Shown: piece after piece, positions 39,466 through 64,000 of the stretch | Position numbering within the stretch: position 1 is the first letter of the stretch | Layout of the letters: the number at the start of each line of letters is the position of its first letter | Source: Piromyces finnis finn | Lineage: Eukaryota; Fungi; Neocallimastigomycota | Direction of reading: 5' to 3' | NCBI GenBank assembly: GCA_002104945.1 | Contig: MCFH01000037.1 | Location: forward strand, 477,121 to 541,120 | Length of the DNA stretch: 64,000 nucleotides | Program-made: the position numbers and the translations under genes | Notes under the pieces: generated by a model | Seen by the model: the letters and a program-made list of their open reading frames with translations, nothing else | Told to the model about the DNA's origin: nothing | Database searches by the model: none

Positions 39466-41592
39466 TATCCCCTTTTTTTAAAAATCTTAGATTCATGAAT
39501 AATTATGTTCAAAAATATACGAAATTAGCAACTTCAGGTTAATACAATATAGAATCATATTCCTTTTTTAAAATTTAAATATAATAATGATATTGAAAAA
39601 TAAAATATATATTTTTATTTTTATTAATGTAAATGCTATTTATTTTAATATCTAATAATATTAAACAGTTAAGTGTGATGTTATACAGTTTTTAGGAAAA
39701 TTAATTCAATACTATTCAGATGATATTCATGATAATCAAAAAAAGATTTATACTCGACATTGTATTCAAACTATAAATAGTTTCATAAAAAATCCAAAAT
39801 CTTTTGATGACTATGCTCTTATAACTAGCATTGTTTATGGTTTAAATTCTTATTTACATTCAAATAACGATATCATTAAAGAAGGTTCATTAAATTTCAT
39901 GACATAAATCAATATTTAAGAATTTTATAAAAATTATTGATTAGTAACATATATTATATATTATATATATAATATAGAAAACCCAGAATATATCACTATA
40001 ACAAATCTTATTAAAATAATTATATCTATTGATATTAATTCTCTTAATCGATATGAACAAATTAAAGGTTTTATAAATAATATATAAATTATAATTATGT
40101 CAATTTGCAAATTATGATTAGACTAAAATATTCTTGTATTTTTAAAAAGCATGCCTTCAATTTATTATCGATAATGGTCATTATATATCAAAGGTTTTAT
40201 TTAAAAATTGTATTTTATTTTTTGAATCCTTTTTAAAAATATGCAAACATCAAAATAGAGATTTACATAAATTAGGTTTTAACGCTATGGATTGTTTGTT
40301 AAATGAAGTAATAATACTTAATAATAAAATTAAATATAAAAATTTTTTATATGGTATACTAATAAAAAATTTTTATATTATACTAATTTTAGATTGTTAA
40401 TTATAGTGAAAATTATTCAGATGAAATTGAAGCTAAAAAGATATTTTGGGTAAATAATATAATTATAATACATCCTAATTTTTGTATAAAAAGTATTGTT
40501 ATTAATCCTAATTTTATATAATTTTAATATATGCTAAAGTACTTTATTGAATATTTCACAAATTCATTAAGAAAAGATGATGCAAGTACCAATGATATAT
40601 CGTTAGCAATTCGCGGCTACGGTTTATTTTCTGGACCTTGTAAAAAATATTTTAGTGAATCAGAATTTAATATAATTATAACTGAACTTTTAAAAAAAGC
40701 TGATTCTATATTTTCAAAGTAAGTAATATTATATTTGTAAAAAGGTGATATATTTATTTATTATATATTAATGATTATTATTGTTGAAGTGATAATTTAA
40801 ATGAAGAAATGTTTCTTCATTTTTCATCATTTTTACAAGCGTATCATTCCATATTGAAGGTTTCAGTGAATGTAGATAATGTTCTTTTAAAAGGAATAGG
40901 TATGATATATAAATTATATAATTATACATGGCTTAATAATAAATATTTAAATATAAATTTAAAAATATATTTTGATGAATTAATGTAGAGCTCATTATTA
41001 CGCAGCTTATGATTAGTTTTCAGTTAATAAATGAAAAATTAAGGTATATTAATTCTAAAGTTATACAACATATTCTATGGGAATTAAATAACAAATCCAT
41101 CATGGATTCATTTTTCTATAAAATTGGTAATTTTAATAAAATTATAAAAATAATTGCTAATAGAGGAAGGTTAAGATATTAATTACTATTTTTTTTATTA
41201 CTTATGGATATTTAGCAAATAACATATTAGTTTTAACATGCTTAGATAAAGAAAAACAGATTGAAACTCCGGAAGATGAAAATGCTATGGATATTGATGA
41301 TAAACCTACGAATGCTATTACAGTTATTAATGATATGATGAATGAAAATGATCATTCATATAATGATTATTATTATCAATTTTGGAAAATTATTCTTGAT
41401 AAAAGTAATTTACCTGAAAGAAAAATTTTTAAAATGGAAGATGATGATCTAATTGAAGATGAAAATAAAAGAAAACAATTTATTCAAAAAATTTATGATA
41501 TTATCATTCAAACAATAATAGATTTTCCAAAACATTTAAATTTAGCATTATACGATGTTGAAAATAACAATGAGGATATTGGTGATAAAGAA

Positions 41593-41657
<65 letters not shown>

Positions 41658-44600
41658 TAATAATAATAGTTCATCAGATAATAGTATACTTTTGTTAAAT
41701 GATAAAACTGGTACTGAAACGAATAGTAGTTCAAATGTTCAGACTTTAAAACCATATTGTATACGAGATTTTGATATTTTCATTAATTATGTTGAGTTTA
41801 CAAAATTAGTTCTTTTAGCAAGTAATACTCGATCTCTTTTTGAAAAATGGATATTTAACTTTGGAAAAGAAATTATTAATTTTTCCGAGAAATATCCATT
41901 AGTTAGTGGTTTTTATAAATTATTTGAATGCTGTTTAACTATTGCTGAAGATCTTCACTTTTTTAATGGAGTTCTGAAAAAGCAATTTATTGGGGAATCT
42001 CATAAGGTAAATATATTAGAAAGTTATATAAAGGAAGAATTTATTAAAAATATATTAATAAATATTTAGGGAATGATAAATGAAATAAACGAACCATATT
42101 CTGGAATTATACAAAGAACCTATATATTGTATACAAAGTATATTAATGAAATTATTATTAGAATGAAGCAATATAAAGATGATTTATTAGTTTCATGCTT
42201 AAAGTTAGTTCTTTCATCTCCTAATGAATTAATTTCATTGGAAGACTTTATGATGCCATTGAAAGTAATACTAAATCTTGGTATCAGTGAATAGTATGTT
42301 AAAATAATGTTTTTTTTATTATATATTACGAATAATTTTCAAATGGTTATTAATGTTATATTAATATAAGTTCATTAGCCAAACTTGGTTTAGACTTTTT
42401 TGAAAAGTGTCTTTCATATATCCCAAAAGAGAAAATGAAAAAATATTATAAAGAAATTTTCCCTCTTTTTAATAATTATTTGATTAATATTAATGAAAAT
42501 AAAGATGCTGAATTAGATGATTATATCTCAAATAATAAAATAAAAATGACAAAGGTATATTAAAGAATAATTTATATTATTATATAAATAAAATTTAAAA
42601 ATGCTTATGTAGTAATATTATTTTTATTCTTTCATTTTTTTAAAGAGAATTAATAAAAAAGAAAAAGAGATAATTGAAGAAACTAATATTAATATTAAGA
42701 TTAAAGTTTTAAAAATATTGGGTATGATTGGTGACGGTATTCAATATCTTTATTCTAATTTTGACATTAAGAACTATTTGAAATGGGATTCTGAAAATAG
42801 TATTTCCTTTGTTCTTCATTTTGTTGATTTTCAAACTGAAATTGATTTAGGTAATAAATATAATGTGAATAACATAGATTGAAACATATCAATTAATATC
42901 TAATTAATAATATAATTTTTTTTATTCAAAGATAAATTATTACCAAGAATACTAGAATTATCACAACATTCATCTAATAGAAAAGTAAAAATATGGGCTT
43001 GTGAATTATTACATTCCATAATCATATATATGGTGGGGCTAAATGCTCATCGTATTCGTGACAATTCTTCTATAAAAGAAAGTTATACAAACAGTTTTAA
43101 TAAATATTATTTAAAAATTTTCCCAGTCATTTTACAACTTTCTGTTGATATTGATAGAATTTCAAGAGATCTATTCTCATTATTAACTTTTCAGCTCATC
43201 CACTGGTTTACTAATAATTCATTAAATGATGATACTGAATCCATAGTATTGCTTGATTGTTGTTTCAATGCATCAATTAGTCAAGATGGACCATTAAGAG
43301 ATTATGGTACACAATGTATAAATGAATTTCTGATATGGACAATAAAACAAAATTTCGATGAAGTAATTTTTTTTTAAATATTATTAAATATATAATTTAT
43401 AATATTTAAAATTTTGTTATTTAATTTATATTTATAAAGAGTAAATTAATAGGAAATATCGAAGTATTATTAGAGAAGATTTATCAATATTGTCGTAATC
43501 CAAATCCATTTAAACGTTTAGGAGCTTCATTGATTTTTAATAAAATTTATGTTGAACTACGTGAAAATCAAAAAATTATAGATAAATTTTTATTTGAAAT
43601 TTTATATTATATACTTTATAATTTAAAGCTTTCTTATTACGACAAGGATGTCACTGGTATTATTATTATCTAAAAATATTAGTATATATAAAGTGTTTTA
43701 TTAACATATTTATTATTATATAAATAATTAAAAGAAACATCTGAGCAATGTAAGATTGCTATCAGTCATATTGTAAGAATAATAAAAAAGACATATTCAA
43801 TATTTATATTACCAAAAGAAAATAGAAATTCATTCCCTGGATTGAAAACAACAGATTTAAATTCTTTAATTAATTGGTTATTACATGAAACTGGTTCAGT
43901 AGAAGAAGTATATTCAAAGCAATGCATGGATTTGGTTATAATATTAAATTCATTACTTCCAGGTTCAAAAAAAATAATAAAATATAATAATATATATGAT
44001 TTATATATATTTATATGATAAATTTTTATTTTTTTATTGTTATTATATAATTATTAGAAAATTCCAAGTTAAATTTAAATGACTTATTTTTTGCAGACAA
44101 TAATATATTCAATGACATATATAAAATAGATGAATTAGTTGTGAAAGAAGATGAAAAAAAAATATTAATGAACAATAATTTCAAGTGGGCAGATCGACTT
44201 TCTATTTGTTTAGAGGGCTTTTCGTGGATAATTAAAAATGAATTAATGGAATCAAGTTTTATTTTCAAGAATAGACTAAATTGTGTTATTAATTCTATTG
44301 TATTTTTCATTAATTCAATATCTAGAAATGAAATTGAACAAAATGAAAATAATTTAGTTTTTTATTCAGTTAGCGAGATTTATAAATTGAATAATAAAAG
44401 ATTTAAAATTACAATTAAAATACTTTATTTTTTAAATCTATTGATTGAAAAATCAGTAGATTTAAAACATACATATAAAAATCTAATAGATAATTATATA
44501 TTATCAGATCAATTTATTAATCTATTAAATTGTTGTCTATTTAATACAAAAGTCTTAGGAAATGATTTAGAAGAAAAAGAAATACAAATAACATATTATA

Positions 44601-47600
44601 AAATACTTCAAAAATTACTAATTTTATTAAAGAAGAATTATATTTATATAGATTATAAAAATTTAGTTTCAAGTATTGAAGAATATGAAAAACTACATTC
44701 AAAGAATTTTTTTGAAACATATGAAGATATTAATTCCGTGACTGAAAATACATCATTCTTAAATAGTATTTACTTATTAAATACATCTGGAATATTAAAA
44801 GATATAATTGAAAGTAAAGGAATGAATGAATATAATTACTATTCAGGATATCTTAACTGTTTAGAAAAAATAAAAAATGATGAAAATCCCTCTTTTGAAC
44901 TTTTAGTAAAGCTATTAATTGATATATGTATGATATGTCCTGATGTTCAAGAAGAGAGTTGGGGAAAATTATTGGTAAAAATAAAAATCATATATTAATA
45001 TTATTAAGAATTATTAAGAATATAAAATTAATATATATAATGTATGAATAGGGATTATCATCTATGACGGATTTAAAGTATTCAGATGTTATTTCTTTCT
45101 ACTCAAGAAATAAATATAAAGTAAACCATTTTTTTAAATAATAATAATTATTTTTGATATTTAATATAAATATTAATAACAATATATTACTTTCTTTTTC
45201 AGATTAATTATCTTTTTATAGTTAACTTTGAAAAGTTTCAAAAATATCTTTCAAATTGTATTTCAGAAAATATTGTTACTGATATACTAAATGATAGTAT
45301 TGATTTAATAGTTGATTATTCTAGTATTATTAATGAAAAAACGAAAATTAAATATTTAATGGAGGTATATTTCAAATTATTGTAATATAAAAATTTTGTT
45401 GTTAATGAATTTAAATATTAATATTTTTTAATTATTTTTCATAAAAAATTATAAATAGATATCTAATCAAATTGAATTTATAAAAAGTTATTTGACATAC
45501 CATTTAGAGAGGAAGAATGTAATTAAAATTAAATATATATTTTTAAATGGTTTTTTCAATTTAATAATTTTTTTTATAAATTAGTTCTATATAATTATAG
45601 ATTATTTTAAAAAATTATTTAAATTGGAAAACAAATTTTTAGAAAAATATGCATCATCAAATTGTAAGGATGAATTGTGTAAAATATATTTATCTTTATT
45701 TGATCCTATGAATACTCTTAAAGTTAAAAGTGAATCTCTTAAACTCTTTCCAATTTTTGAAAGTTGTTTAAGTAATAATTATCATGATCAGGTAAAATAA
45801 AGAAATTATTAATTATATATTAATAATAAACAACATATTAAATTTTAATTTTATTTTTTAGCTTGAAAAAGCAATTGAGTTTATTATATATAATCAATTC
45901 CCAATATCCTCACATGATCTTACTAAGGATACTATACAGTAAATATTAATAAAATTAAGTAGTTTATTAATTTAGTTTTGGTATTTGATTATACAAATAA
46001 GAAATTGATTTATTTAATTATATATATTATAATAGATATATTGAATATAAAAATACAATAACTGCACTGATTAATTTATTATCCACAGGAAATTTTATAA
46101 TAATAAAAAATTTAATTTTATTAACATGTAAAGAAAAGAATTTCAAGTATCAAGAAAAGATAACAGAATTTATTGCAATAATAATTAATAACTATACGGA
46201 AGAACAATTTACAAATTTTACTGATTACTGCATGAGGTACAATTATAATATCACTAAAACCTTTCATGAAAATAATTATACTTTTAAAAACTAATTTAAT
46301 TTATATCAATAGCAATTTATTAAATACTTGTAATGATCCTTTAGTTAGAGTAAATGTTATTAAACAATATTTAATACCAGCATTGATTTATGTTAAGTCC
46401 AAATACAAAATCAAATTTTATTCAAAATATATAAAACAATTAACTGAAGTGATAAAAGAACAATTAATTAATAAAGAAGACGAATTATGTATACAACTGA
46501 ATATCCATTCCAGTATTTTTAATATTTTACAAATATCCTTTTTATAACAATAGAATTATATTTTTTTTAAACTTATAATAACCCTGATATTATATATTAT
46601 ATCCTTAACTCTATTTTGCTAAATACATTATGTATGAGTATTTACCAAATATTGAAGTAAATGGTACAAATAGTATAATAAATAAGGCTTTTTGTAATGG
46701 TATTGTTAAAAATGGAAAAGAGTTATTAACAAGTTTAATGAAACCAGTTGCATATATTGCTAGATCAGTTGCAGTAAATATATATTATGTAAATTTTTTT
46801 TGGAAGTATTTTATTATACTTATACATTTATATTATGATTAATTTAAAAAGAATATAAATAGTAGTAATGAAGAATATATAAGAGCCAACAAATATTATA
46901 AACAATCAGCATATTGTTTAATTGCTGTTATGCTTTATTGCACTCAAACAAAGGAAAACTTTTTTAATGCCTTCTTATTCCAAGAAAATGAAGCTAAAAA
47001 TGAAAAAATATGGGAAAATATAATTGACACTGAAAATAAAATATTTTTCAAAGTTGAAGACGGAATTCCACATAAAAAAAATAGGAGATATTATGAAAAT
47101 ATTCAATATAGAAAAAATGTTATTCGTAATCAAAGAAATACTTTTTCAAGTTTTCTTTCTGCAAGTAGTTTAAGCCAAGTAAAAATTAATTAATTTTATT
47201 AATGTTAAAGATATACTATCTTATTTTATAATATTTATTAATTACTATTTTTAATATAAGTCCGTGGACTTTTTAGGTGAAAATAACGAAATAGATTTAA
47301 GTCAATATAATGAAAATGAATGGAATAATACAGAAAGTGATCAATATAGCAAAAATGAAATAACAAAAAATTATGAATATAGGTAAGCATAGAAAATAAA
47401 ATAAAAAATTGTAGGATATTCAGTAAATAATATAAATATGTGAATGCAATTTAAACAATATTAACTTTAAATAATATATATAGTGAACCATTTTTTGATC
47501 AAGATTGTGTTAATAATAATATATGTATGACAGTTATTTTAAAAATTATAAAAAAAATTTCAAATCCTAATAGTAATTCAACAGATCAAACTCTAATAAT

Positions 47601-50600
47601 GCCAGCATGGATGAATGCATTGTTAAAAGTATTTACTGCATTTTCAACACATATCAATGTTAAAATATTCATAGCAAAAATTATTGTAAATTATCCAGAT
47701 TCATTTGTTGCCTTTGCTAACTCATGGTATATACCATTAGTTAAATTCATATCAAGTTGTGAAGATTTTAATGACGGATTTACTTATTACGTTGAAGTTT
47801 GTTTAAAAATAATAAATCAAATATCTATATATCTATTTAATAAATTAAATATTAAAACATAAATATTAATTCTATTATATAAATATAAATAATAAAAGGA
47901 TTTATGTAATTTACTTATTAAATGGAAAGAATTAGTTAATATTGAAAATAATTCCGAAAATAGATTTAATTTTACAAATATGATGGTATAAGGATATATA
48001 ATTATAAATTTATTATTTTAACATTAATTAACATTTATTATTTTAAGAATATTATTATAAGATTTTCAAATGTCCAAGATGGCATATCCATGAAAGCAAT
48101 TATCGATATTATTAATGAATTTTTAAATAAATTTAAAGAACTTATTGATACACCAGTGGTAATATAATATTGTTTTTATAACTTTGATAATTATTAAATT
48201 TATGTGATTTGATACTAAAATTTTAATTAACCGTTTTGTTATAAAGGAAATAATCTATAATTTTTTAAAAAATAATAACGATCAGCAAAATAATGTTCAT
48301 TCAATTAATTTAGCTATTCAATTATTGGCATCTTTTGTATCCAATGATATACCAGAATATAATACGTTAAATATGGCATCCAGTAATACATATCCAACTG
48401 AAAACGAATTTTATGGTATTTTAGCAAATTATATTCAATTTAATCATAAAAATATATATGAGGCAGCATCAGAGGTATAAAAAATATAGATTTAATCTAA
48501 ATTTATAAAATATATACAAAGTACGCAAATTTAAAAATTTATATCATATTATTTATAGTTATGTGGTCTAATACTTAAAAGAATGAGTAAAACTAGTATG
48601 AATGATAATGTACTTTCCATCATTACAAATAAGGTATGAATCAACAATGAAATAATAAATAAATTTAATGTATCATAATATGTTAATATATTTTAATTAT
48701 TAAATTAAATTTATATTATAGATTGAATTATTGAATCCGGTTAATACAAAAAATAAAACTATAGATAAATTTATTATTTGTCTTCATCAAATTGGTTTGA
48801 ATTACAGTGAAATATTAGATAAATATCTAGTTTTAATTTTATTTTTATTCCCAAATCTTTCTCTGGATAGAAAAATTCAAGCTTTAGAAATTATTCGTTT
48901 AAGATGTCAAACCAGAAAAGAAACGCTTTTTGATGAATTAAAAGGAAAAGAATTAGAAGGATTACTTATGAATAGGTATATTTTAAAAAAAATAGAATAT
49001 ATAAAACAAAAATAAATAAAAGAAAAAAGGAGAGAACCCAAAATAATTAAATTAATTTTTTAATATATATAATATTTTTATTTATATGTTAAAGTTCTGA
49101 AAATATTCAATATTTAACCTTGGATATTATTTATAATATCAAGGATGTATTAAATGAAGAACAAATTAAATTTTTACTTAATAATTCAAATCATTTTATT
49201 AAACATAATTCATTAAGATGTCGAAATATCTTTTATGCAATCCTTAAAGATATTTATAATTTAAATATAAAAGAAGAAATTAAAGAGTCCGTAAAAGTAA
49301 TTTTATTAAATGGATTAGCAGATTCTGATGAAGAAATAAGAAATAATATTTTATCAATTTGGCATGATTCTTCTTTAGTTGATTCAACATTTGATCTTTT
49401 TGACCGTATATTAAAGTAATAATACTATTAAATAGTTTTAAAAAAATGAATAAATGAAATAACTAATCAATCTTTATTGCATACTAATGAATTGAATTAA
49501 AAATCATTAATATATACATATAATGTTTTTTTTTAAAAAAAACCATTTACCTAGTTCATTATATTCTAACAAAACAGAATCAATTTATTTATCATATGCA
49601 ACACCAATTCTATTATTATCCATATCAGATTTAGAAAATAACTTATTTATGAATTCATTACCAAATGCAATATTTGGAAAAAACAAAAAGTTTAATATGT
49701 CATTTATTAGTTCTTCAATGGATCCACTTTTTACTTCATCTCAAAATGATTCAGTAAATTAATAAAAAAAAATATTTAAATTTCTTTTATTAAATATATT
49801 CTAATATAATTATTAATATAAAATATAATAAAATATAATATTATTCTAATAGAATTATAACAGAATTTTTTCTAGTCAAAGAGAACTTTCGTTTACTCCA
49901 ACAATTGAAATGGGTAAAATCAAAATAAATGAGTAAAATAATTTTATGAAAAAAAGGTTTTAATTTTTTTTATGATATATTTATAAAAAAAAACAATTAT
50001 AGGTTCTCAGTATAGTTATAAACCAACTTATTCACAATCAACTCTTTTAGTCAATTTTGAAATTAATCATTTAAATGATGGATCTAAGAATGTAAAAAAC
50101 AAGCCACTAATAAATAATTTTGAAAATAATAATAATAAATCAAGTAGTTCAAATGTAAAAGAATCTAGTAATATATCTCCAACCCAGAGAAGAAGAGCCA
50201 TGAGATTCAATAGAACAAATGATTCCAAAAAAATATTTTTTGCAAACATCGCTGAAAGAAAGAAAAAAAGAATCGAAAAACATTTAAAATTGGGTGTAAA
50301 TAACAAAATATATAATAAAAATAGTATTAGTTTTAAAAAATTAAGTCTATCTCTGAATATAATAATAATTAAAATTTTATTTTAAATATATGCCTATAGA
50401 AACAAGCAAAGAATAAATTGGTATATACATTAAGAAATTACAAAGAAGGGGAACTTCCTGACATTCAAATAAAGTATAAAGAAATAATACAACCTCTTCA
50501 AGCTTTAGCTATTGCTGATATTGATATCTCAAAAAATTTATTTGTCATGATTCTTAATTCTATTTGGTTAAAAAGAGAAGAGATTATGGTTATTTATATA

Positions 50601-53600
50601 TATTATAGAATTAAATATCATAAATTCAATAACTATATTAATAATTATTTATTAATCTATTTTCATATTTATAAAGAGCGAAAATGAAAATGATATTTTT
50701 ACCGAAAAAATTGAAAAATGTTTAAATATCATATTAAAGAATACAACAGAATATGATTCTTCATTCATAACATCCATTTTAGTAAGTTACTTAATGTATA
50801 GATATTTAGTTTTAATTATTAGATTAATCTCTGTACCATAGAGTATTAATTTTTTATTATATTTATTTATTAAACAAAAATAGACTTTTTGTTTAAAAGA
50901 AAATATATATGTGGATACGGATATCATAAAAAAAATAGGGATGAACAGTAATAATGAGGCTTTAGCTATTTTACTTATTGAAAATATTCAATTAAATCAA
51001 CAAGAGAATTCAAAATCCATTATGGATAGTGATAATAGGAATCTTTGGAATAACTTAGCTCAATTATATAAAGATATAGGAGAAAATGAAATCTATCGAA
51101 ATATTGAAGAAAGCAAAATTAAAGCAAATCAATCAATAAAAGGTATATGAGTAATATAAATAGTATTTTTTTTTATTTATTTTTTTATCGGTTTTATTAA
51201 TAACATAACTTTTAAAAAAAATGTATAAATATTTTTTCTATTTGACGTTAAATATAGATGCAATTGAAATGGAAGTCCTAGGCTTATATCAAGATGCCTT
51301 ATCAATTTATTCAAAAAACATAGAAAATACTAATCAAATGAATGATCAATATGAGGTAATTTAAAAGAATTATATAAAAAATATTATAAATAATAATATA
51401 TTGATTATGAGTTATATTAATAAATAATATTAAAATGTAATAGTTAAATTTATGTGAGCAAGGAAGATTAGAATGCTATAATAAGGTAAGCATTATTAAA
51501 AATTTAAATAAATATATATTAAAAGATAATAATAAATTAATGAATTAAATCTATTAGCTTGGAAGTTGGTCTGATTTAGTAGATAATGTTGTCGATATAT
51601 GTGAAAATAATACCGAAAATTTATGGAATAATAATAATAAGGTAAATTATAGGAATAATAATAGATATTTATTATACAGATAATAAAATTAATTTTATTG
51701 TATATAAATCTATTTTTAATCTTACTAATGCTAAAAATTATATTAAAATTTATACCAATAATTATAAAATTATAGGATTTATTAAACTTTTACATAAGAG
51801 GTTGCATAAAATTACACCAAGGTTTTTATGATAGAGACAAAAATTATCATGAATGGAATGAAGATCATCAAAATCCAGTTATTAAATTTTTAAATAATGC
51901 TTTAAAAGATAACAATAAAAGGTAAACTTTTTTTTTACTTTAATTATTAAATAATAATTATTCATCCCTCTTTTTCTTTTTTAGTATTTCTTAACATTAT
52001 ATATTTATATGTATATATAATTATCATTTTAATAGAGAAATTGTAAATTCGTCTTATCCATATGGTAATATTATCAACATGTGTAATATAAAAACAAAAT
52101 AATTCGAAATTAAAAAAAAAAACTAATTCTTTTATTATTATTGTATAATAATAGAATTATCGGTTATTAGTATGATGGAAAATAATATAAACCAAACTAA
52201 ATATTATATATATCAAACTTATGAAAAGATATTTAAATCTTTATCCAATTCAAACTTTTTTACAAATAGTAATCACTTAATAAATGCTAGTCAAATACAA
52301 TCTGTAAATATAGATAGTTATTTAGATATTTAAATCATTTAATATGAAATTTTCTACTTATTTATATATCTATGTATATTAGATTTTAGAAATATCTGAA
52401 GCCATTGATCTTATAGAAAATGTTAAATCTGAAAATTCAAAATATATGTTTAATAAGATGATATCAAAATGGAATTCCAGATATCCAACAGATAATGAAA
52501 TATACATTGATTATTGGTTTGATATTTGTGAAAATCGAGAAATTATATTGAATTTGATTAAAAAGGCCTTTGAAAGTAATATTTATGAAGATAAAATAAT
52601 TGATCAGAAAAAAAATATTTGGTTAAAATGTAGTAAAGCTGCTTTAAATCTTAAAAACTTTTTCGTTGTTGCTTCATGTCTCAGTAAAAGTAAAAGCTAT
52701 GGTCTTTCAAAAATGGAATTTTCTTATGAAGCCATTAAATATATTACTATTGAATTAAAAGTATTAAAAGATCCTGTCGAAAGATTAAAAAAGATTGTTT
52801 CTCTTGGGATTTCACTCACTAGTATATATAAGGTTAGTATAAAAATAGTCTATTTAAAAATATGTATATACAAAATAATAATTATATAAATAATGTATAC
52901 TTTTATTGTTACTTTCATTCCTAAATATTATTAATATTTCAATAATTACTTTTTAAATGAATTAAAAAATTTATTGGGTAAATAGAAATTAGAAAAGAAT
53001 CCGGATTATCAATTACTATCAAAATTATATCAATTAGATAGTGATTTATCTTCAATTATTCTTGAAGATAACAAATCTATGCATCAGAGTCTACTAAACG
53101 AGTGTCATTCAAATCCAAAATTTTCAAAATTTATACCAGAAACCTTTACTACAAATATTTCAACATTATTATATTATTTCCAAGGAAGAGGTCTTAAAAG
53201 ATTATTAGAAACCCTGAAACTTTATAAAACAAACAATGTTATTGAGGTCAGTATAATTCAGGATCTTGAATAAAATTTCATTTCCATTGTTTGATAAAAA
53301 TAGGATGTATTGTAATACATGTAATTTATAATCATATAAATCAACTAAAATAAATATACTATGTATTTTTTCCATTTTTTATTTAGGAAAATAAAAATAT
53401 ACATTTAGCTATTGCAAAATTCTGCGATAAAAGTATTAAAAGGATGGAACATAATTTAAATGAAGATATTGATGAAGTAAGTATACAAATATTTAAGGAT
53501 ATCGTTCTGAAGATCGATTATAATAATTTTTCAAAAAAAAAAAAAAAGGAAAATAATCTCTTTGATAACAATAATCGATTAATTAATAATACCTTTATTC

Positions 53601-54850
53601 CAATAAAAACTATTTATAGATTATTAAAAAAAATTAACATTTTCTATATTTATATTATTTTATTACTAACGAAAAACAAACTTTTCAATTCAAAACTAAT
53701 TTATATATTTAATATAGGACAATTTACAAAAAAATTTCAATGAATATTCCAAATTAGAAATCAAATACCTTTTAAGATCCTTAAAGTATGGTTCAATTGA
53801 AGCTATTGAACTCTTCCCAAGATTATTACAATTAATTGAAAATAATGAAGATAATCAAAAAAGTTTTATGAAAAATGTAATTTTAATATATAATTAATAA
53901 TAAATAGAATAAATTATTTATATTACAGAATGTTTGTTCAATCAATTTATTATAACTATATTATATCCATTTAAAAAAAATAATAGGTTGAAGGAATAGA
54001 ACCTTGGTTATTTATTCGATGGATACCCCAAATAACTTCTCTTTTAGATAAAGATTGTGGCTATTCATTAATTCCTTTATTGAAGGAGGTATTAAATTGG
54101 AATAAGAATTATATATTATAAATATTAAAATGAAGTTTTTACTAAAAAAAATGAAATTTTCAATCATTTTTTTTTTTAGATTGCAATACATTATCCTAAT
54201 GCCTTAAATTATCCATTAAATATTAGTTGTGAACAATTTAATTTTGAAGAAAAAATCACCAATAGCTTTAATATTGATGTAGAAAAAGAAGTTGAAAAAT
54301 TAAAAGAAATTATATATGACGAACAGAATGAAACCTTTATTATGGAATTACAAAGATTATCTGAACCAGTTCATATTTATAAAGATTATGCAGAAAAAAT
54401 AGCAGTAAGTTAATTAATAATAAATCGAAGAAAATAAAAGTTTTTATTTTTATGTTGTGATATATAAAAATAGTTTATAAATCTTAATTATTTATTTAAA
54501 ATGCCTTTGAAATTAGGAAAAATTAAATAGTAAAGAAAAATCAAGTGTAAAAGTTGCAGATTTAAAGGAATATTCAAGAATTATTTTTGAATATTTAATT
54601 GATCCTCCATCAAATAAAGCTGGAACAATATATATCCTTTTTTAATTATTATGACTCTTTTTGTTTAAAACATTTTAATAATATTACAACCCTTTTTTAT
54701 ATTATTTACTTTTTCTTTAACTCTTTTTTTTGTATATATATACATCAGAAATTTTCAAAAAAATATAAAAATGAATTAAAAAAGGTTTTTGGTATGTTTA
54801 ACTATTCCTTTTCATATTATCGATTGAATTATTTATACCAATATATATAT

Positions 54851-54897
<47 letters not shown>

Positions 54898-57673
54898 TCT
54901 ATTTATGATATATAATATAATAAGATCTATCAAATTTAGTAAAAACTAAGCCAAGAACCTACTTAAATGCATTTAAAAAACAATTACAGACATTACGCAG
55001 TGATAAAGAATTCGAAAGAAATGAAACTTATAAAACACACTTGAAAAATTATTCCAATTGGCTTGCAGAATATCAAGGAAAGAATTATGACAAGGTAAAA
55101 TTATATATAAACATATAAATTAATATTTTAAATATGTTTTAAAAGTAACTTTAGTTAATAATAAAAAATGATTAAATATAATTTATTAAATACAATACAA
55201 AAAGGAAATTGAAATTCCTGGTCAATATGATGGTAAAAGTAATCCAAGGTTAAAAAAGCATAAAATGATTTCAATTTTCAATTCAAATATATTAGTACTA
55301 AATTCACTTAGAAAGCCAAAAAGATTAGAAATTATTGGTGATGATGAATCTCAGCATTTATTCCTTGTAAAGGTAATAACCAGTATATATATATATATTT
55401 TTTAGGTTTCTTTCTAAATAAATAATCATAATAATCAATTATTCCAATTTAATTTCATAGGGTGGTGAAGATTTAAGGTTGGATCAAAGAATTCAACAAT
55501 TATTCAATATAATGAATGATTTATTAATGAAAGAAGCTTATTGTAAAAAAAATAATATTAATATTAAGACATATAAAGTAATTCCCATGACCGGTTCTTT
55601 GGGTATTATTGAATGGGTTGTAAGTTTAATATTTTTTTTTAAAAAAAAAGATTAATAGAGCACGGATATTCTAGATGATTAATGTGTATTAATGTTAATG
55701 GATAATTAAAATTGATTTTATTTATCATATTTTATCTATAACAAAAAATAATCCTTAGCCTGATACCATATCCATTGGTAGTTGTGTTCAAGATATGTTG
55801 GAAGATAAAAATTTAATAACAAATTCTAGAAATAAATATTGTGATTGGGTTAATTCATTTTATAAAAGAGGAAATGGTTAGTTTTCCTTAATTACTATTT
55901 TAATAAACTAATATAGAAAAGAAAAAATAATTAATCTTTTTTTTTATTTATTTAATAAATATAATAGAAAATGTATTCCATACCATGTTTAAAAAAGCTA
56001 GTAGAGAAGATACCATTGAAAATTTAATAAAAATTGAAAATCAAATACCTAAAAGACTTATTAGTAAATATTTATTAAACATTATTAGAACACCTGATGT
56101 ATTTATTAAAATCAGAAATGAATATGCAAATTCACTTGCTGCTATATGTATTTGTTCTTATATACTTGGTGAGTATTTATTATTAATGACGTCTAATTAT
56201 TGTATGTTATAAAATTATTCCTAATCTATGATATATATATATATATATATATAGGTATTGGAGATCGTCACTTGGAAAATATTCTTATTAATAAAAATAG
56301 GTAATTTAAAAGAATATATATATAATACATATAATATATATTTGTATATATGATGATCTGATAAATTCTCCTTATCGTTCGTGGAGGGAGAGATATTTGG
56401 ACCTTTAAGAGTTTATAACATAATATATTTATATATTTAATTTTATATTTATAACTCGATATATAATAATTATTTTATATATATTAATTTAGTGGACAAC
56501 TTATTGGTATTGATTTTGGACATGCATTTGGGTAAGTTTTATAGCTACACTAATATATTTTATATATTCCATACCATAAAATTAATTATTGATCTATTTA
56601 TTAAATATTTATTGAAAGAACTGCTACCGAAGTTTTAGCTATACCAGAAATGGTACCATTTAGATTAACATCTCAAATGGTAGAATGTCTTGATCCATTA
56701 GGTATATCTGTTTTATTAGAAATTCCAATGATTTATATACAAACAGGTAGAGAAATTCGAAAATTTTAATCTAAATATAGAAAAGATGAAAATAAATTAT
56801 AATCTTTTGATGAAAAATAAAATCTAAAAAAAAATATTCTTTGTAAAAGTTTTAAGAGAAAATAGTGAAATATTATTAAATGCCATGAGTATCTTTATTA
56901 ATGAGCCTTTATTGGATTGGAGAAACTTTGCCTTACGTCAAGCAAAACAACAAAGTAAACCATTTTTAATCAATTTATTATTCATTTAAAATTATCAATA
57001 CCAACTAATTTTTAATCGATTTATTATTCATTTAAAATTATCAATACCAACTAATTTTTAATTATATTTATTATTCATTTAAAATTATCAATACCAACTA
57101 ATTTTTAATCGATTTATTATTCATTTAAAATTATCAATACCAACTAATTTTTTAATTATAAAGAAATTTCTTCTAAAGAAGAAGAACAATCGTTGAATGC
57201 AAAAGAACCACCAAAATGGTATCCTAAACAAAAATTAAGTATTGCTGAAAGAAAACTTAGAGGAGAAAACCCATCAAGTAAATATAGATCATGTCATACC
57301 TAAACTTTTATCCCAATAATTTTCTTTTATTAAGATGAAATATAAAAAAAAACCCCTCAATTAAACCAAAAATTATATGGATTATATTAATTATTTTATT
57401 CTTTTACAATAATAAATATTATGATTTTCATTAGATATTTTAATTACAGAACTGGAAAATGGACATGGTAATACAAACTTTTTACGTTATTTAAAAGAAA
57501 TTGTTAAAGGTGATCAAAGATATAATATAAGAGCACAACCAGAATATAATGAAGTTAATGATGAAGGTAGTAACATACTAAGCCCAATTCAACAAGTAAA
57601 ATGTTTAATTGATTTAGCAACAGACAAAAATATATTAGGAAGAGCATGGGTTGGATGGTCACCATTTGTTTAA
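38578..57673 (+). CDS. PRKDC: DNA-dependent protein kinase catalytic subunit (DNA-PKcs); about 65 exons, two AT-AC introns
   Basis: Collinear with human DNA-PKcs landmarks: KWDSEN..LDKLLPRILEL..RKVKIWACELLHS; NPFKRLGASLIFN; YKEGELPDIQIK; LFPRLLQLIE; EIPGQYDGK; FLVKGGEDLRLDQRIQQLF; GIGDRHLEN; IDFGHAFG..EMVPFRLT; WYPKQK; FATC CLIDLATDKNILGRAWVGWSPFV* (TAA 57671-57673). Frame continuity was checked manually across most junctions. Confidence 0.95.
41593..41667 (+). repeat. Coding (AAT)n repeat giving a poly-Asn tract of about 25 residues in the DNA-PKcs N-HEAT region
   Basis: In-frame AAT run inside ORF 41287-42069. Confidence 0.95.
46533..46626 (+). other. U12-type AT-AC intron 1 in DNA-PKcs
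   Basis: 5' ATATCCTTT, canonical branch TCCTTAAC (46602-46609), 3' ATAC. Phase-0 removal joins ILQ|IMYEYLP. Confidence 0.92.
54632..54743 (+). other. U12-type AT-AC intron 2 in DNA-PKcs
   Basis: 5' ATATCCTTT, branch TTCTTTAAC (54713-54721), 3' ATAC. Phase-1 removal gives NKAGTIYQKFSKKYKNELKKVFG (cf. human [22 protein letters not shown]). Confidence 0.87.
56355..56403 (+). ncRNA. Candidate structured intronic RNA (GC-enriched hairpin with UUCG loop)
   Basis: TCTCCTT (56367-56373) pairs with AGGGAGA (56385-56391) around a TTCG loop (56378-56381). A weaker basal stem is possible (GATCTGA/TTGGACC). The surrounding intron is almost pure A/T. Confidence 0.35.
56973..57160 (+). repeat. Four-copy 46/47 bp tandem repeat (2 x 93 bp higher-order unit) in a DNA-PKcs intron
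   Basis: Unit ATTTATTATTCATTTAAAATTATCAATACCAACTAATTTTTAAT followed alternately by CG and TAT; copies start at 56973, 57019, 57066, 57112. Confidence 0.95.
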
Positions 57674-58934: not shown

Positions 58935-61900
58935 ATGAATCAAACTCCAAGAAAAAATTCAAATAATAAAAACAATGATACAAAACAAAAAAAGCAAATG
59001 AGTATTATGTCTTTTTTTAATACTCCAAAAATAAAAAAAGTACAAGCTCAGGAAGTCACACCGGAATCAAATAATTTAGAGTCACCAAATACAAAGAAAA
59101 ATAATGAATATATTTTAAATAATATTAGCAATTTAAAAATCAATGAAAATACATTTTCCCCTCCCATTGAAAAAGATACGGTCAATGAAAATAAAAATGA
59201 TAACAAAAAGAAATTAAGTGAAGAAAAGAAAATCCATGAAATAAATAAAGATTCTGAGGATGAGGATGATATGCCAATAATGTATAAAAAAAAGGTATAA
59301 AGTTAAGAAAAATTATTAGTAAAATTATAAAGATTATAAATTTTAAAAAGAAAAACTACTTATTATTATATACATAATATATGTATTAATTGGGATAGGC
59401 AAAAAGAATAAAGATCGAAAATAATGATATAGAAACACCAAAAGTTGAAAATAATATTAATAATGAAGGTATATATAAAAAATAATAAAAATTAGTAGTT
59501 TTACAATAACTATAGTAATTAATATTTATTATTTAAATTTTAAATATAAAAGATGATGACGACGAAGACGATGATTTACCAATAAGACCACTTAAGAACT
59601 TAAGAAGAGGAACACAAAGAAAAAGAATTAGTTATAAAGAAAGTGATAGTGAGGATTCGGGAAATGATGATAGCGATGAATATATACCAAAAAAGGAAGA
59701 ATCAGGTAAACTAAAATCTAAAATTAAAATTATTTTTAAAATTTATTACCTCCTTTTATTTTTTCTTAAAAAATGCTTTTACTTAAAAAAAAATAGAGTA
59801 TATATATAAAAATAAATTTACAATTAATCATTTCTATTATTTATTATCAATTTTCATAAATAATTATTAATATTAAAAAAATTGTCTAAAAAAAATGAAT
59901 GAAATAATAAATATTACTTGCTATTAATTTTATTAATGAACTATCTACAATCTATCAATATTTTTAAAATAATTAATGAAATAATATATATATGTGATAA
60001 TTATAATTATTATATTAATAGATGAAGATGAATATAAAGATGACGTTGTTGAGGAGGAGGAACCGGAAACAGCATCAGAAAGTGATGATGATGTAGCATA
60101 TGAAGATATGAAAAAGAAATCAAGTAGAAAAATTAGTAAAAGCAGTAGTTCAAGTAGTATTTCAATAAAGAAAGATAGTTCATATAAAAGTCCAATAGAA
60201 AAATTAAGTGCTTTTAGATCCCCAAAAATGGCTAGTAAAACAAATTTATTTGGATTAAGTACACAACAAGAAAAACGTAAAGAAAAAGAAGAAAAATTTA
60301 AGGAGAAAAATGAGGATCGTTACAGTTGGTTAATGGATATTAGAGATGAAAATGGTAAAAGACCAGGTGAGGAAGATTATGATCCACGTACTCTATATAT
60401 TCCACCTGCAGCATGGAAAAAGTTCACACCATTTGAACGTCAGTATTGGGAAATTAAAGCAAAACATTGGGAAAAGGTTGTCTTTTTCAAAAAAGGTAAA
60501 TTCTATGAACTTTATGAAAAAGATGCTGATATAGGTCATCAAGAATTTGATTTAAAGATGACTGATCGTGTAAATATGAGAATGGTAGGTGTCCCAGAAG
60601 CTTCATTTGAACAATGGGCATCTCAATTTGTAGCAAAGGGTTACAAAGTTGCTAAAGTTGATCAAATGGAAACTGCATTGAAAAAAAGTATGAATGCTAG
60701 AAACTCTAAATCCAAGGAAGAAAAGGTTATTAAGCGTGAACTTGCACAAGTTTTAACTGCAGGTACATTAGTTGATTCCGGTTTCCTTACGAACGATATG
60801 AGTGCATATTGTGTAAGTATAAAAGAAGAATTACAACCTATAAATGGTGTGTCAGAATCATATATGGTTACAGAAGATCGTTCACCTCCAAAATTCGGTA
60901 TATGTATAGTTGATACTACCACAGCGACATTTAAATTCTCAACATTTGTTGATGATATAGACAGAACCCGATTTGAAACCCTTTTAATTCAATATAAACC
61001 AAAAGAAATTGTTATTGAACGTGGTGGTTTAAGTCAACGTACTATTCAAATGTTAAAAAGAATTGTAGGTAATAAGGATCAATGGAATGTTTTAATTCCA
61101 GAAAAAGAATTCTGGGGACCTGAAAAAACCGAAATGGAATTAAAAATCCAAGATTACTTCAAGAATTCTGATAAAAAAGAAAGCAGTGAAGATGTTGAAA
61201 TGAAAACAGAACAAGATGAATCAATGGATATTGATAATGATAAAAATAGAAATATTCCAGAAAATTGGCCAACTGTATTAAAGCAAGCCGCAAATGAACC
61301 AGTTCTTTTATCTGCTATTGGTGGTCTTTTATGGTATTTACAATCATTAAAAATTGATGTTGAACTTTTCTCCCTTAAAAACTTTAGTTTCTATGATCCT
61401 GTTAACGACGCTTCCAGTCTTATTTTAGATGGTCAAACATTAATGAATTTAGAAGTTTTCCAAAATAATGGTGATGGATCTACAGAAGGTACTCTTTTTG
61501 AACTTTTAGAACACTGTACCACACCGTTTGGTAAGAGACAATTCCGTAATTGGATTTGTCATCCTTTAAGAGATATTGATGCTATTGAAGACCGTTTGAA
61601 CGCATCGGATGATATGTTAAATATATATGTGGAAGAAAATAATTCAAGTTTAGTTGATTACATTGATACTATTTTAAGAAAACTTCCTGACTTGGAAAGA
61701 ATCATTAGTCGTATTCATGCTGGTTCTTGTAAGGTTAAAGAATTTATTCAATCCTTAAAAGCATTTACAATTATTATGGAACTATTTATTAATGTATTAA
61801 ATTCCCAAGTGGATCATTTAACCTCAAAAAGATTAAAGGAGATTGCTCAATTTGGCTTCTTTGATGTTTTAAAAGAAGAATTAATATGGTTCCAAAACGC

Positions 61901-63429
61901 ATTTGATTGGGAAAGAGCCACTAAAGATAATAACATTACACCAGTCGACGGTTATGATGAAACCTATGATCAAACAAAACAAGCCATTAAAGATATTGAA
62001 ATAGAACTACAAGATTACCTCCGTAAAATTCAAAAGAAATTGGGTTCCAAAGATATCGTCTATAAGGATTTGGGTAAAGAAATTTATCAAATTCAAGTAC
62101 CCAAGAGATTAGTAAAATCCGTTCCAAAGGATTGGATTCAAATGTCAAAGACTCAAGCTGTTAATCGTTATTATAATGCTAGTTTACGTGATGATATACA
62201 AAGATTAAATGAAGCTAAAGAATTATTTAATGATGCAGAAAGTGAAGTAAAACAACGCATATACCAAAGATTTGATGCTCATTATGATAAATGGCTTCAA
62301 GTAATTAAATTAGTAGCTGAAGTTGATTGTTTAGCTTGTTTAGCTCGTTGTCGTGAAGTTTTAGGTGAGCCTTCTTGTCGTCCAGAATTTGTAAGTACTC
62401 TTGATACAGAAATGACAGAAAGTAGTGTACTGGAACTTACGGAATTAAGACATCCATGTGTAAATGTTGGAGTAACCCAAGATTTTATTCCAAATGATAC
62501 CTATCTTGGAGGCGTCTACAATGAATTAGATGGTTCAATGGACACCGGTAAAGAAAGACCAAAACTTATTCTTTTAACAGGTCCAAATATGGGTGGTAAA
62601 TCTACACTATTACGTCAAACTTGTATAGCGGTAATCATGGCACAAATTGGTTGTTATGTACCAGCTAAAAAATGTCGTTTAACACCATTTGATCGTATTT
62701 TCACCAGAATTGGAGCAAATGATAATATTTTAGCAGGACAAAGTACATTTATGATTGAATTGGCCGAAACTTCAAAAATTTTAAAGGAAGCAACTCCAAG
62801 ATCACTTGTTATTTTAGATGAACTTGGTCGTGGTACAAGTACTTTTGATGGTTTCTCTATTGCCTATTCTGTATTAAATTATATTATTACTCAAGTTCGT
62901 TGTATTGGTTTATTTTCTACTCATTATGGTATGCTTACGGAAGAATACAAAAGCAATCCTTTAGTTGCCTGTAAATTTATGAGTTTCCATAGTGATGAAG
63001 AAAATCATGAAGTTATTTTCCTTTACAAGTTAACTGATGGTATTTGTCCAAAGAGTTATGGTATGAATGTTGCCAATATTGCCGGTGTTCCAAAGTCTAT
63101 TGTACTACAAGCTGAAACTGTTGCCGCAGAATTTGAAAAGAATTCCAAAATTCAAGAAGCAGAACTAACCACGTAAGTTTATATAAAAATAGGGATCAAA
63201 TATATATATTATTTATTTATTTATTTATTTATCTAAATTTTAAAAATAAAAAATCTAATTTTCTTTTTTTTTAACCTATTCATTTTCCAGTTCAAATGAT
63301 TTAACCATGATACATCAAGCTGATTTTGCCTATTTATTTAATTCAATCAAGTCTATAGATGATGCTAAAAATATTAATACTCAAATGGCAAAAACAATTA
63401 AATCTATTTATTGTTCATTACAAAAATGA
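58935..63429 (+). CDS. MSH6: MutS homolog 6 (mismatch repair); 5 exons
   Basis: N-terminal PIP box QMSIMSFF (58995-59018); YDPRTLYIPP; FFKKGKFYELYEKDA (Phe-X-Glu mismatch motif); Walker A LTGPNMGGKSTLLRQ; DELGRGTSTFDG; STHY; CPKSYGMNVA. Stop TGA at 63427-63429. Confidence 0.96.

Positions 63430-63844: not shown

Positions 63845-64000
<156 letters not shown>

Follow-up and report, generated by a model that had tools for sequence, protein, structure and literature searches.

A very probable U12-type AT-AC intron in the DNA-PKcs gene of a Piromyces-like gut fungus

The window analyzed here, a 64-kb stretch of fungal DNA, contains a gene for DNA-PKcs whose reading frame is interrupted at positions 46533–46626 (+ strand) by a short interval with unusual ends. 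This locus raises the questions of whether the interval is removed, at which nucleotides the flanking exons are joined, and which of the two spliceosomes would carry out the reaction. As set out below, the interval is very probably a U12-dependent AT-AC intron in the DNA-PKcs gene of a Piromyces-like gut fungus of the Neocallimastigomycota.

The sequence-only reading had taken the gene for a fungal DNA-PKcs, and this assignment stands, the host being an early-diverging fungus. In all profile and sequence searches the exons were searched singly (the spliced model was checked for stops only), and separate exons of the + strand matched, in order, the Pfam families PF20502 (DNAPKcs_CC1-2, 3.9e-25), PF08163 (DNAPKcs_CC3, on four exons, best 1.2e-20), PF00454 (PI3_PI4_kinase, 3.9e-12), and PF02260 (FATC, 5.8e-10). 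The part of the gene backed by these family matches extends from 42916 to 57670 (+) and is divided by many short introns; exons for more N-terminal parts extend the gene in the 5′ direction to about 38.9 kb. The top full-length relatives are the DNA-PKcs proteins of chytrids (Borealophlyctis, Podochytrium, Spizellomyces, and Synchytrium) and of Dissophora, followed by those of animals and Naegleria. The orthologues from Spizellomyces punctatus (SPPG_00077) and Dissophora globulifera (KAG0316168) share the domain order found here (CC1-2, CC3, kinase, FATC), and in the CC3 region early-diverging fungal orthologues such as these two show 30–40% identity. A large representative sequence search gave no full-length DNA-PKcs from the Neocallimastigomycota; it returned a 113-amino acid fragment at 67% identity together with distant orthologues. 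A PDB sequence search with the exon upstream of the interval returned a chance match only.

Directly 3′ of DNA-PKcs lies a single-exon MSH6 gene (59994–63176, +) with an open frame of 1060 amino acids and all five MutS domains. Its product is 94% identical to MSH6 of Piromyces sp. E2, 90% to that of Neocallimastix, 89% to that of Anaeromyces, and ∼54% to those of chytrids, which puts the host in the Neocallimastigomycota, closest to Piromyces. The G+C content of the window is ∼19%. Features typical of this AT-rich genome are a run of ∼24 asparagine codons within a DNA-PKcs exon (41164–42066) and the long TAT/ATT-type microsatellite with which the window ends (63850–64000).

The exon upstream of the interval (46313–46532, +; …NLLNTCNDPLVRVN…SSIFNILQ) ends with the complete codon CAA and is matched by chytrid orthologues in tblastn searches. 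The exon downstream of it (46627–46773, +; IMYEYLPNIEVNG…ARSVA) is matched by the Pfam CC3 profile, by human DNA-PKcs, and by fungal orthologues. Its 3′ end is most likely at 46773 (GCA/GTAAAT) and not at the alternative donor 46788, because the comparison with contigs from relatives points there. The two exons are bounded on their outer sides by ordinary GT-AG introns, one of 76 nt at 46237–46312 (+, GTACAA…AATAG) and one of 78 nt at 46774–46851 (+, GTAAAT…AAAAAG).

Across the interval itself, which corresponds to C164:523653–523746 of the genome assembly, the sequence reads TTT AAT ATT TTA CAA, then ATATCCTTTTTATAAC ... TATATCCTTAACTCTATTTTGCTAAATAC, and then ATT ATG TAT GAG TAT TTA CCA. The U12-type 5′ splice site ATATCCTTT occupies 46533–46541 (+) and follows the [A/G]TATCCTT rule at intron positions +1 to +8. 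Near the opposite end, the branch-site box TATCCTTAACTC (46600–46611, +) contains the core TCCTTAAC (46602–46609), which ends 17 nt before the 3′ end of the intron; the branch adenosine at 46607 or 46608 is located 18–19 nt from the last intron base. The spacer between this box and the terminal AC (46625–46626, +) is TCTATTTTGCTAAATAC, without a polypyrimidine tract, and the 3′ end of the intron reads …GCTAAATAC, with 46626 as its last base. A gap lacking a GT donor, carrying U12-type boxes, and bounded by AT and AC had been described from the letters, and this description is borne out: neither GT nor GC is present at the end of the exon.

The combination of signals is rare in its surroundings. 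The core TCCTTAAC occurs a single time on the + strand of the window, and the paired pattern ATATCCTT…(40–70)…TCCTTAAC occurs once, compared with 0 of 100 dinucleotide-preserving shuffles. A second apparent U12 pattern at 55768–55908 was rejected as a false positive: the ATATCC there is coding, and TTCCTTAAT opens an ordinary GTTAGT…AG intron. An Rfam scan of the 64-kb window matched no RNA family.

The reading frames require an intron spanning 46545 to 46609. The upstream frame (…SSIFNILQ) ends at a stop at 46545, the downstream frame (IMYEYLP…) is open from 46609 only, and the two exons are shifted by one frame because the intron is 94 nt long. Removal from AT to AC restores the frame and joins …FNILQ to IMYEYLP… (the joined frames were checked for stops), and for the donor at 46533 the AC at 46625–46626 is the sole AC that leaves the frame open. 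The intron is in phase 0, which is the phase least favored for U12 introns in animals and plants.

Could the major (U2-type) spliceosome instead remove the gap by means of a cryptic GT-AG pair, as GT-AG-only gene predictors would be driven to propose? We listed exhaustively the in-frame, stop-free GT-AG, GC-AG, and AT-AC pairs, and the GT-AG pairs all lose 17 to 64 residues. The best of them, from 46513 (CCA/GTATTT) to 46657 (TTGAAG/), would excise 145 nt and leave the frame open. However, it drops 17 residues including IMYEYLP, a segment that is matched to VMYSRLP of the human protein and to the CC3 profile from position 64. Alignments with orthologues are contiguous at 46532/46627, and the spliced transcript of a relative described below retains all of the residues that this pair would remove. 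Cryptic GT-AG splicing is therefore highly improbable as an explanation of the gap.

The position of the junction follows from comparison with the protein family. In the upstream exon (73 amino acids from 46314), residues 12–59 match positions 1–49 of the CC3 profile, which leaves 14 residues for positions 50–63, and the downstream exon matches positions 64–104 of the same profile (PF08163) from its first residue. The exons thus meet on the profile without leaving out or doubling a position. The first residue of the downstream exon is likewise where the match to residues 1879–1917 of human DNA-PKcs (VMYSRLP…) begins, and in a local tblastn alignment of Spizellomyces DNA-PKcs, residue 1702 falls at 46532 and residue 1703 at 46627. 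The open frame would allow orthologue alignments to begin as early as 46609, yet five of them begin precisely at 46627 and three at 46630.

When metagenome contigs were searched with the downstream exon, two from relatives proved to cover the same junction. The first, JAEEGK010450080.1 (hereafter L005), is genomic and colinear with window positions 46482–47798 at 74% identity including introns; the second, Ga0307907_104117 (hereafter L006), can be aligned with the window as seven successive blocks of 74–85% identity. They match residues 1–50 and 1–49, respectively, of the downstream exon.

The exons of L005 read …ELCIQLKIHSSIFNILQ and IMYEYLPNAEVNG…, with the same codon boundary as in the window. 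Between them lies an AT-AC counterpart of 111 nt (L005:52–162) that starts with ATATCCTTTTTTT, in which the 5′ splice site is kept as ATATCCTTT, and that ends in …ATTATAC. This interval behaves as an intron, because its interior has diverged, its ends and its 5′ box have been kept, and the difference in length is not divisible by three. The branch box of L005 is TTTTTAAC, with both C changed to T, and lies behind a run of T. It is located ∼36 nt from the 3′ end, whereas the box of the DNA-PKcs intron in the window stands at the textbook distance of 18–19 nt. The L005 box still pairs with U12 by way of G·U pairs (−9.2 kcal/mol).

In L006, all six of the window introns that intervene between the aligned blocks are missing, indicating that this contig is a spliced transcript. 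The AT-AC intron and the 76-nt GT-AG intron upstream of it are both without counterpart, and across the join L006 reads …ATATTACAA/ATTATGTATGAG… (TTACAA/ATTATGTATGAG). The removal of the intron at the predicted junction is thus seen in the transcript of a relative, with ∼82–84% nucleotide identity in the exons (84% for the upstream exon). The AT at 46533–46534 is repeated at 46627–46628, which permits three placements of the cut; we placed it at 46532/46627, the sole placement with recognized splice-site dinucleotides, and the AC terminus in the window agrees with the L006 junction. Profile, orthologues, and transcript therefore all agree on the join of 46532 to 46627 that the sequence-only reading had given.

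At the next intron, L006 uses an acceptor equivalent to 46862/46863 (L006:540–560, …AAATAG/TAGTAATGA), 11 nt past the in-frame acceptor at 46851/46852. L006 runs out of frame downstream and contains in-frame stops, because this acceptor lies 11 nt too far 3′. Use of the shifted acceptor appears to reflect noise in splicing or a nonproductive isoform.

The same comparisons bear on whether the interval is removed at all. A pseudogene or an assembly artefact would account for the in-frame stop at 46545, and for nothing else. Against this reading, the DNA-PKcs domains are conserved and ordered through to FATC, the independent metagenome contig L005 shows the same exon–intron–exon layout, and the transcript L006 is spliced at the site. 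We regard the chance that the interval is retained in this way as negligible.

If the interval is a U12-type intron, the genome is expected to encode the minor spliceosomal snRNAs, and the sequence-only reading had predicted U11, U12, U4atac, and U6atac in this organism. Searching the fungus's own genome assembly (56,455,805 bp in 232 contigs) with the Rfam models yielded one locus for each of the four. U12 (C189:428380–428555, 66.6 bits against a cut-off of 53) and U6atac (C112:211500–211648, 52.1 bits against 33) exceed the Rfam thresholds; the U4atac candidate (C90:253883–254011, 49.2 bits against 53) and the U11 candidate (C152:317514–317628, 38.2 bits against 39) fall just below theirs. 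The prediction is thus confirmed, with two of the snRNAs as near-threshold candidates. A match to a SNORD14-like C/D box snoRNA (L004:2162–2325, −), ∼550 nt from the U11 candidate, scored 52 bits, under the cut-off of 64, and contains a long insertion.

Besides an Sm site, the U12 RNA has …AAUGAGUAAGGAUAA… as its branch-site box. Its box GAGUAAGGAUA is predicted to pair with TATCCTTA[A]CTC of the intron through 11 bp with one bulged adenosine (−12.9 kcal/mol). The 5′ segment CGUCCUUAUCU of the U4atac candidate is the perfect complement of AGAUAAGGACG in U6atac and forms an 11-bp stem II; both strands differ from the human pair, indicating that the stem has co-varied. [quoted passage not shown]

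The U6atac gene is single in the genome. It has a GGC in place of the AGC triad, and its 5′ part can be folded as GCC…GGC (−6.0 kcal/mol). Its box facing the 5′ splice site is GCCGA, where the Rfam consensus is AAGGA, and its pairing with ATATCCTTT is weak (−5.0 kcal/mol, compared with −10.7 kcal/mol for the consensus box). We had considered this box an unexplained novelty and dropped that view, since it corresponds to the published "[GU]CCGA CC variant" of Acanthamoeba, Physarum, cnidarians, oomycetes, and others with working minor splicing (Dávila López 2008, PMC2396436). The fungi Rhizopus and Phycomyces have the AAGGA box (PMC2396436).

A weak exon-by-exon search of the genome for proteins of the minor spliceosome gave a match of 35–38.6 bits to half of the PF18036 domain (Ubiquitin_4), which we take to be the SNRNP25-type domain, and a non-specific match of 27.9–29 bits to the CHHC finger PF05253 (zf-U11-48K). 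The same weak search gave no match to PF16021 (PDCD7/59K).

AT-AC termini do not by themselves identify the spliceosome, as rare U2-type AT-AC introns occur in other eukaryotes. The intron could accordingly have the ends at 46532/46627 and yet be spliced by the major spliceosome, an idea with which the poor pairing of the U6atac box and the 5′ splice site is compatible. However, U2-type AT-AC introns are without the ATATCCTT and TCCTTAAC boxes, both of which are perfect at 46533–46626. Moreover, the branch box forms its 11-bp duplex with the U12 of this fungus, the minor snRNAs were located in the same genome, and several lineages in which minor splicing works have the CC variant as their sole U6atac (PMC2396436). 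We consider U2-type splicing of these AT-AC ends very unlikely; in this fungus, the reaction would be performed by the minor, not the major, spliceosome, as suggested by the boxes and the snRNAs together.

On this U12-dependent reading, the steps of the reaction can be sketched from what is established about splicing by U12. The U11/U12 di-snRNP would bind the 5′ splice site ATATCCTTT and the branch box TATCCTTAACTC together, with U12 pairing to the branch box so that the branch adenosine is bulged out. The U4atac/U6atac.U5 particle would join next, and excision at CAA/AT…AC/ATT would leave …FNILQ and IMYEYLP… fused in frame.

Genome-wide, 20 loci carry the strict pattern RTATCCTT…TCCTTAAC, 6 with a gap of 25–55 nt and 14 with a gap of 56–86 nt, the DNA-PKcs intron included. 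Most of these loci are AT-rich intervals starting with ATATCCTTT. A control with the two motifs in swapped order gave 2 occurrences, and the expectation from composition is ∼1.5 per gap range. The backward control gave 15–17, owing to one tandem array at C162:97384–97925, which consists of at least 15 copies of a 33–36-bp unit (TATAGGAATTGTATTAGGAAATTCATTTTCATT…). The strict-pattern loci begin with ATATCC in 17 of 20 cases and with GTATCC in the other 3; the AT-AC subtype thus seems to dominate the recognizable U12 introns of this genome, although the pattern is biased by base composition.

Two further AT-AC candidates are present in the window. One lies in DNA-PKcs itself, just 5′ of the kinase domain (54632–54743, +); it starts with ATATCCTTTTTT, terminates in AC, and carries TTCTTTAACTC at 18 nt from its end. 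It would be in phase 1 and join …KAGTI-Y-QKFSKKYKNELKK, a place where support from orthologues is weak. The other is a 77-nt interval on the opposite strand (35692–35616, −) that reads ATATCCTTTAAC…TTTCTTTAAC…TTGAC.

The second AT-AC candidate in the same gene, taken with the decayed and distant box in L005, leads to a speculative extension, which we rate as rather unlikely: the gut-fungal minor spliceosome with its CC-variant U6atac could tolerate weaker and farther branch sites than the textbook ones, and the intron position might be ancient and common to other DNA-PKcs lineages.

A study that corrects the 2008 survey describes minor introns and minor snRNAs in Piromyces finnis and Neocallimastix californiae (Larue & Roy 2023, PMC10639083). 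In comparison with the U12 AT-AC introns known across eukaryotes and in these two fungi, the intron described here has the same ATATCCTTT start, the same TCCTTAAC near the 3′ end, the same AC terminus, the same lack of a polypyrimidine tract, and the same accompanying minor snRNAs. Nothing essential is different, phase 0 being the less usual feature. In the accessible part of PMC10639083, the DNA-PKcs intron is not individually described, and our literature search returned no report of a minor intron in PRKDC of other organisms. With minor splicing in gut fungi already published, the DNA-PKcs intron is a further instance of it rather than a discovery.

The intron is ordinary for its lineage and leaves the understanding of the minor spliceosome unchanged. 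For the gene itself, a correct DNA-PKcs model requires an AT-AC-aware join of 46532 to 46627 and probably another of 54631 to 54744. The Neocallimastigomycota were formerly believed to be without minor splicing, and the intron enlarges the set of minor introns known from them by one well-supported case, backed by comparison with relatives and by a relative's transcript.
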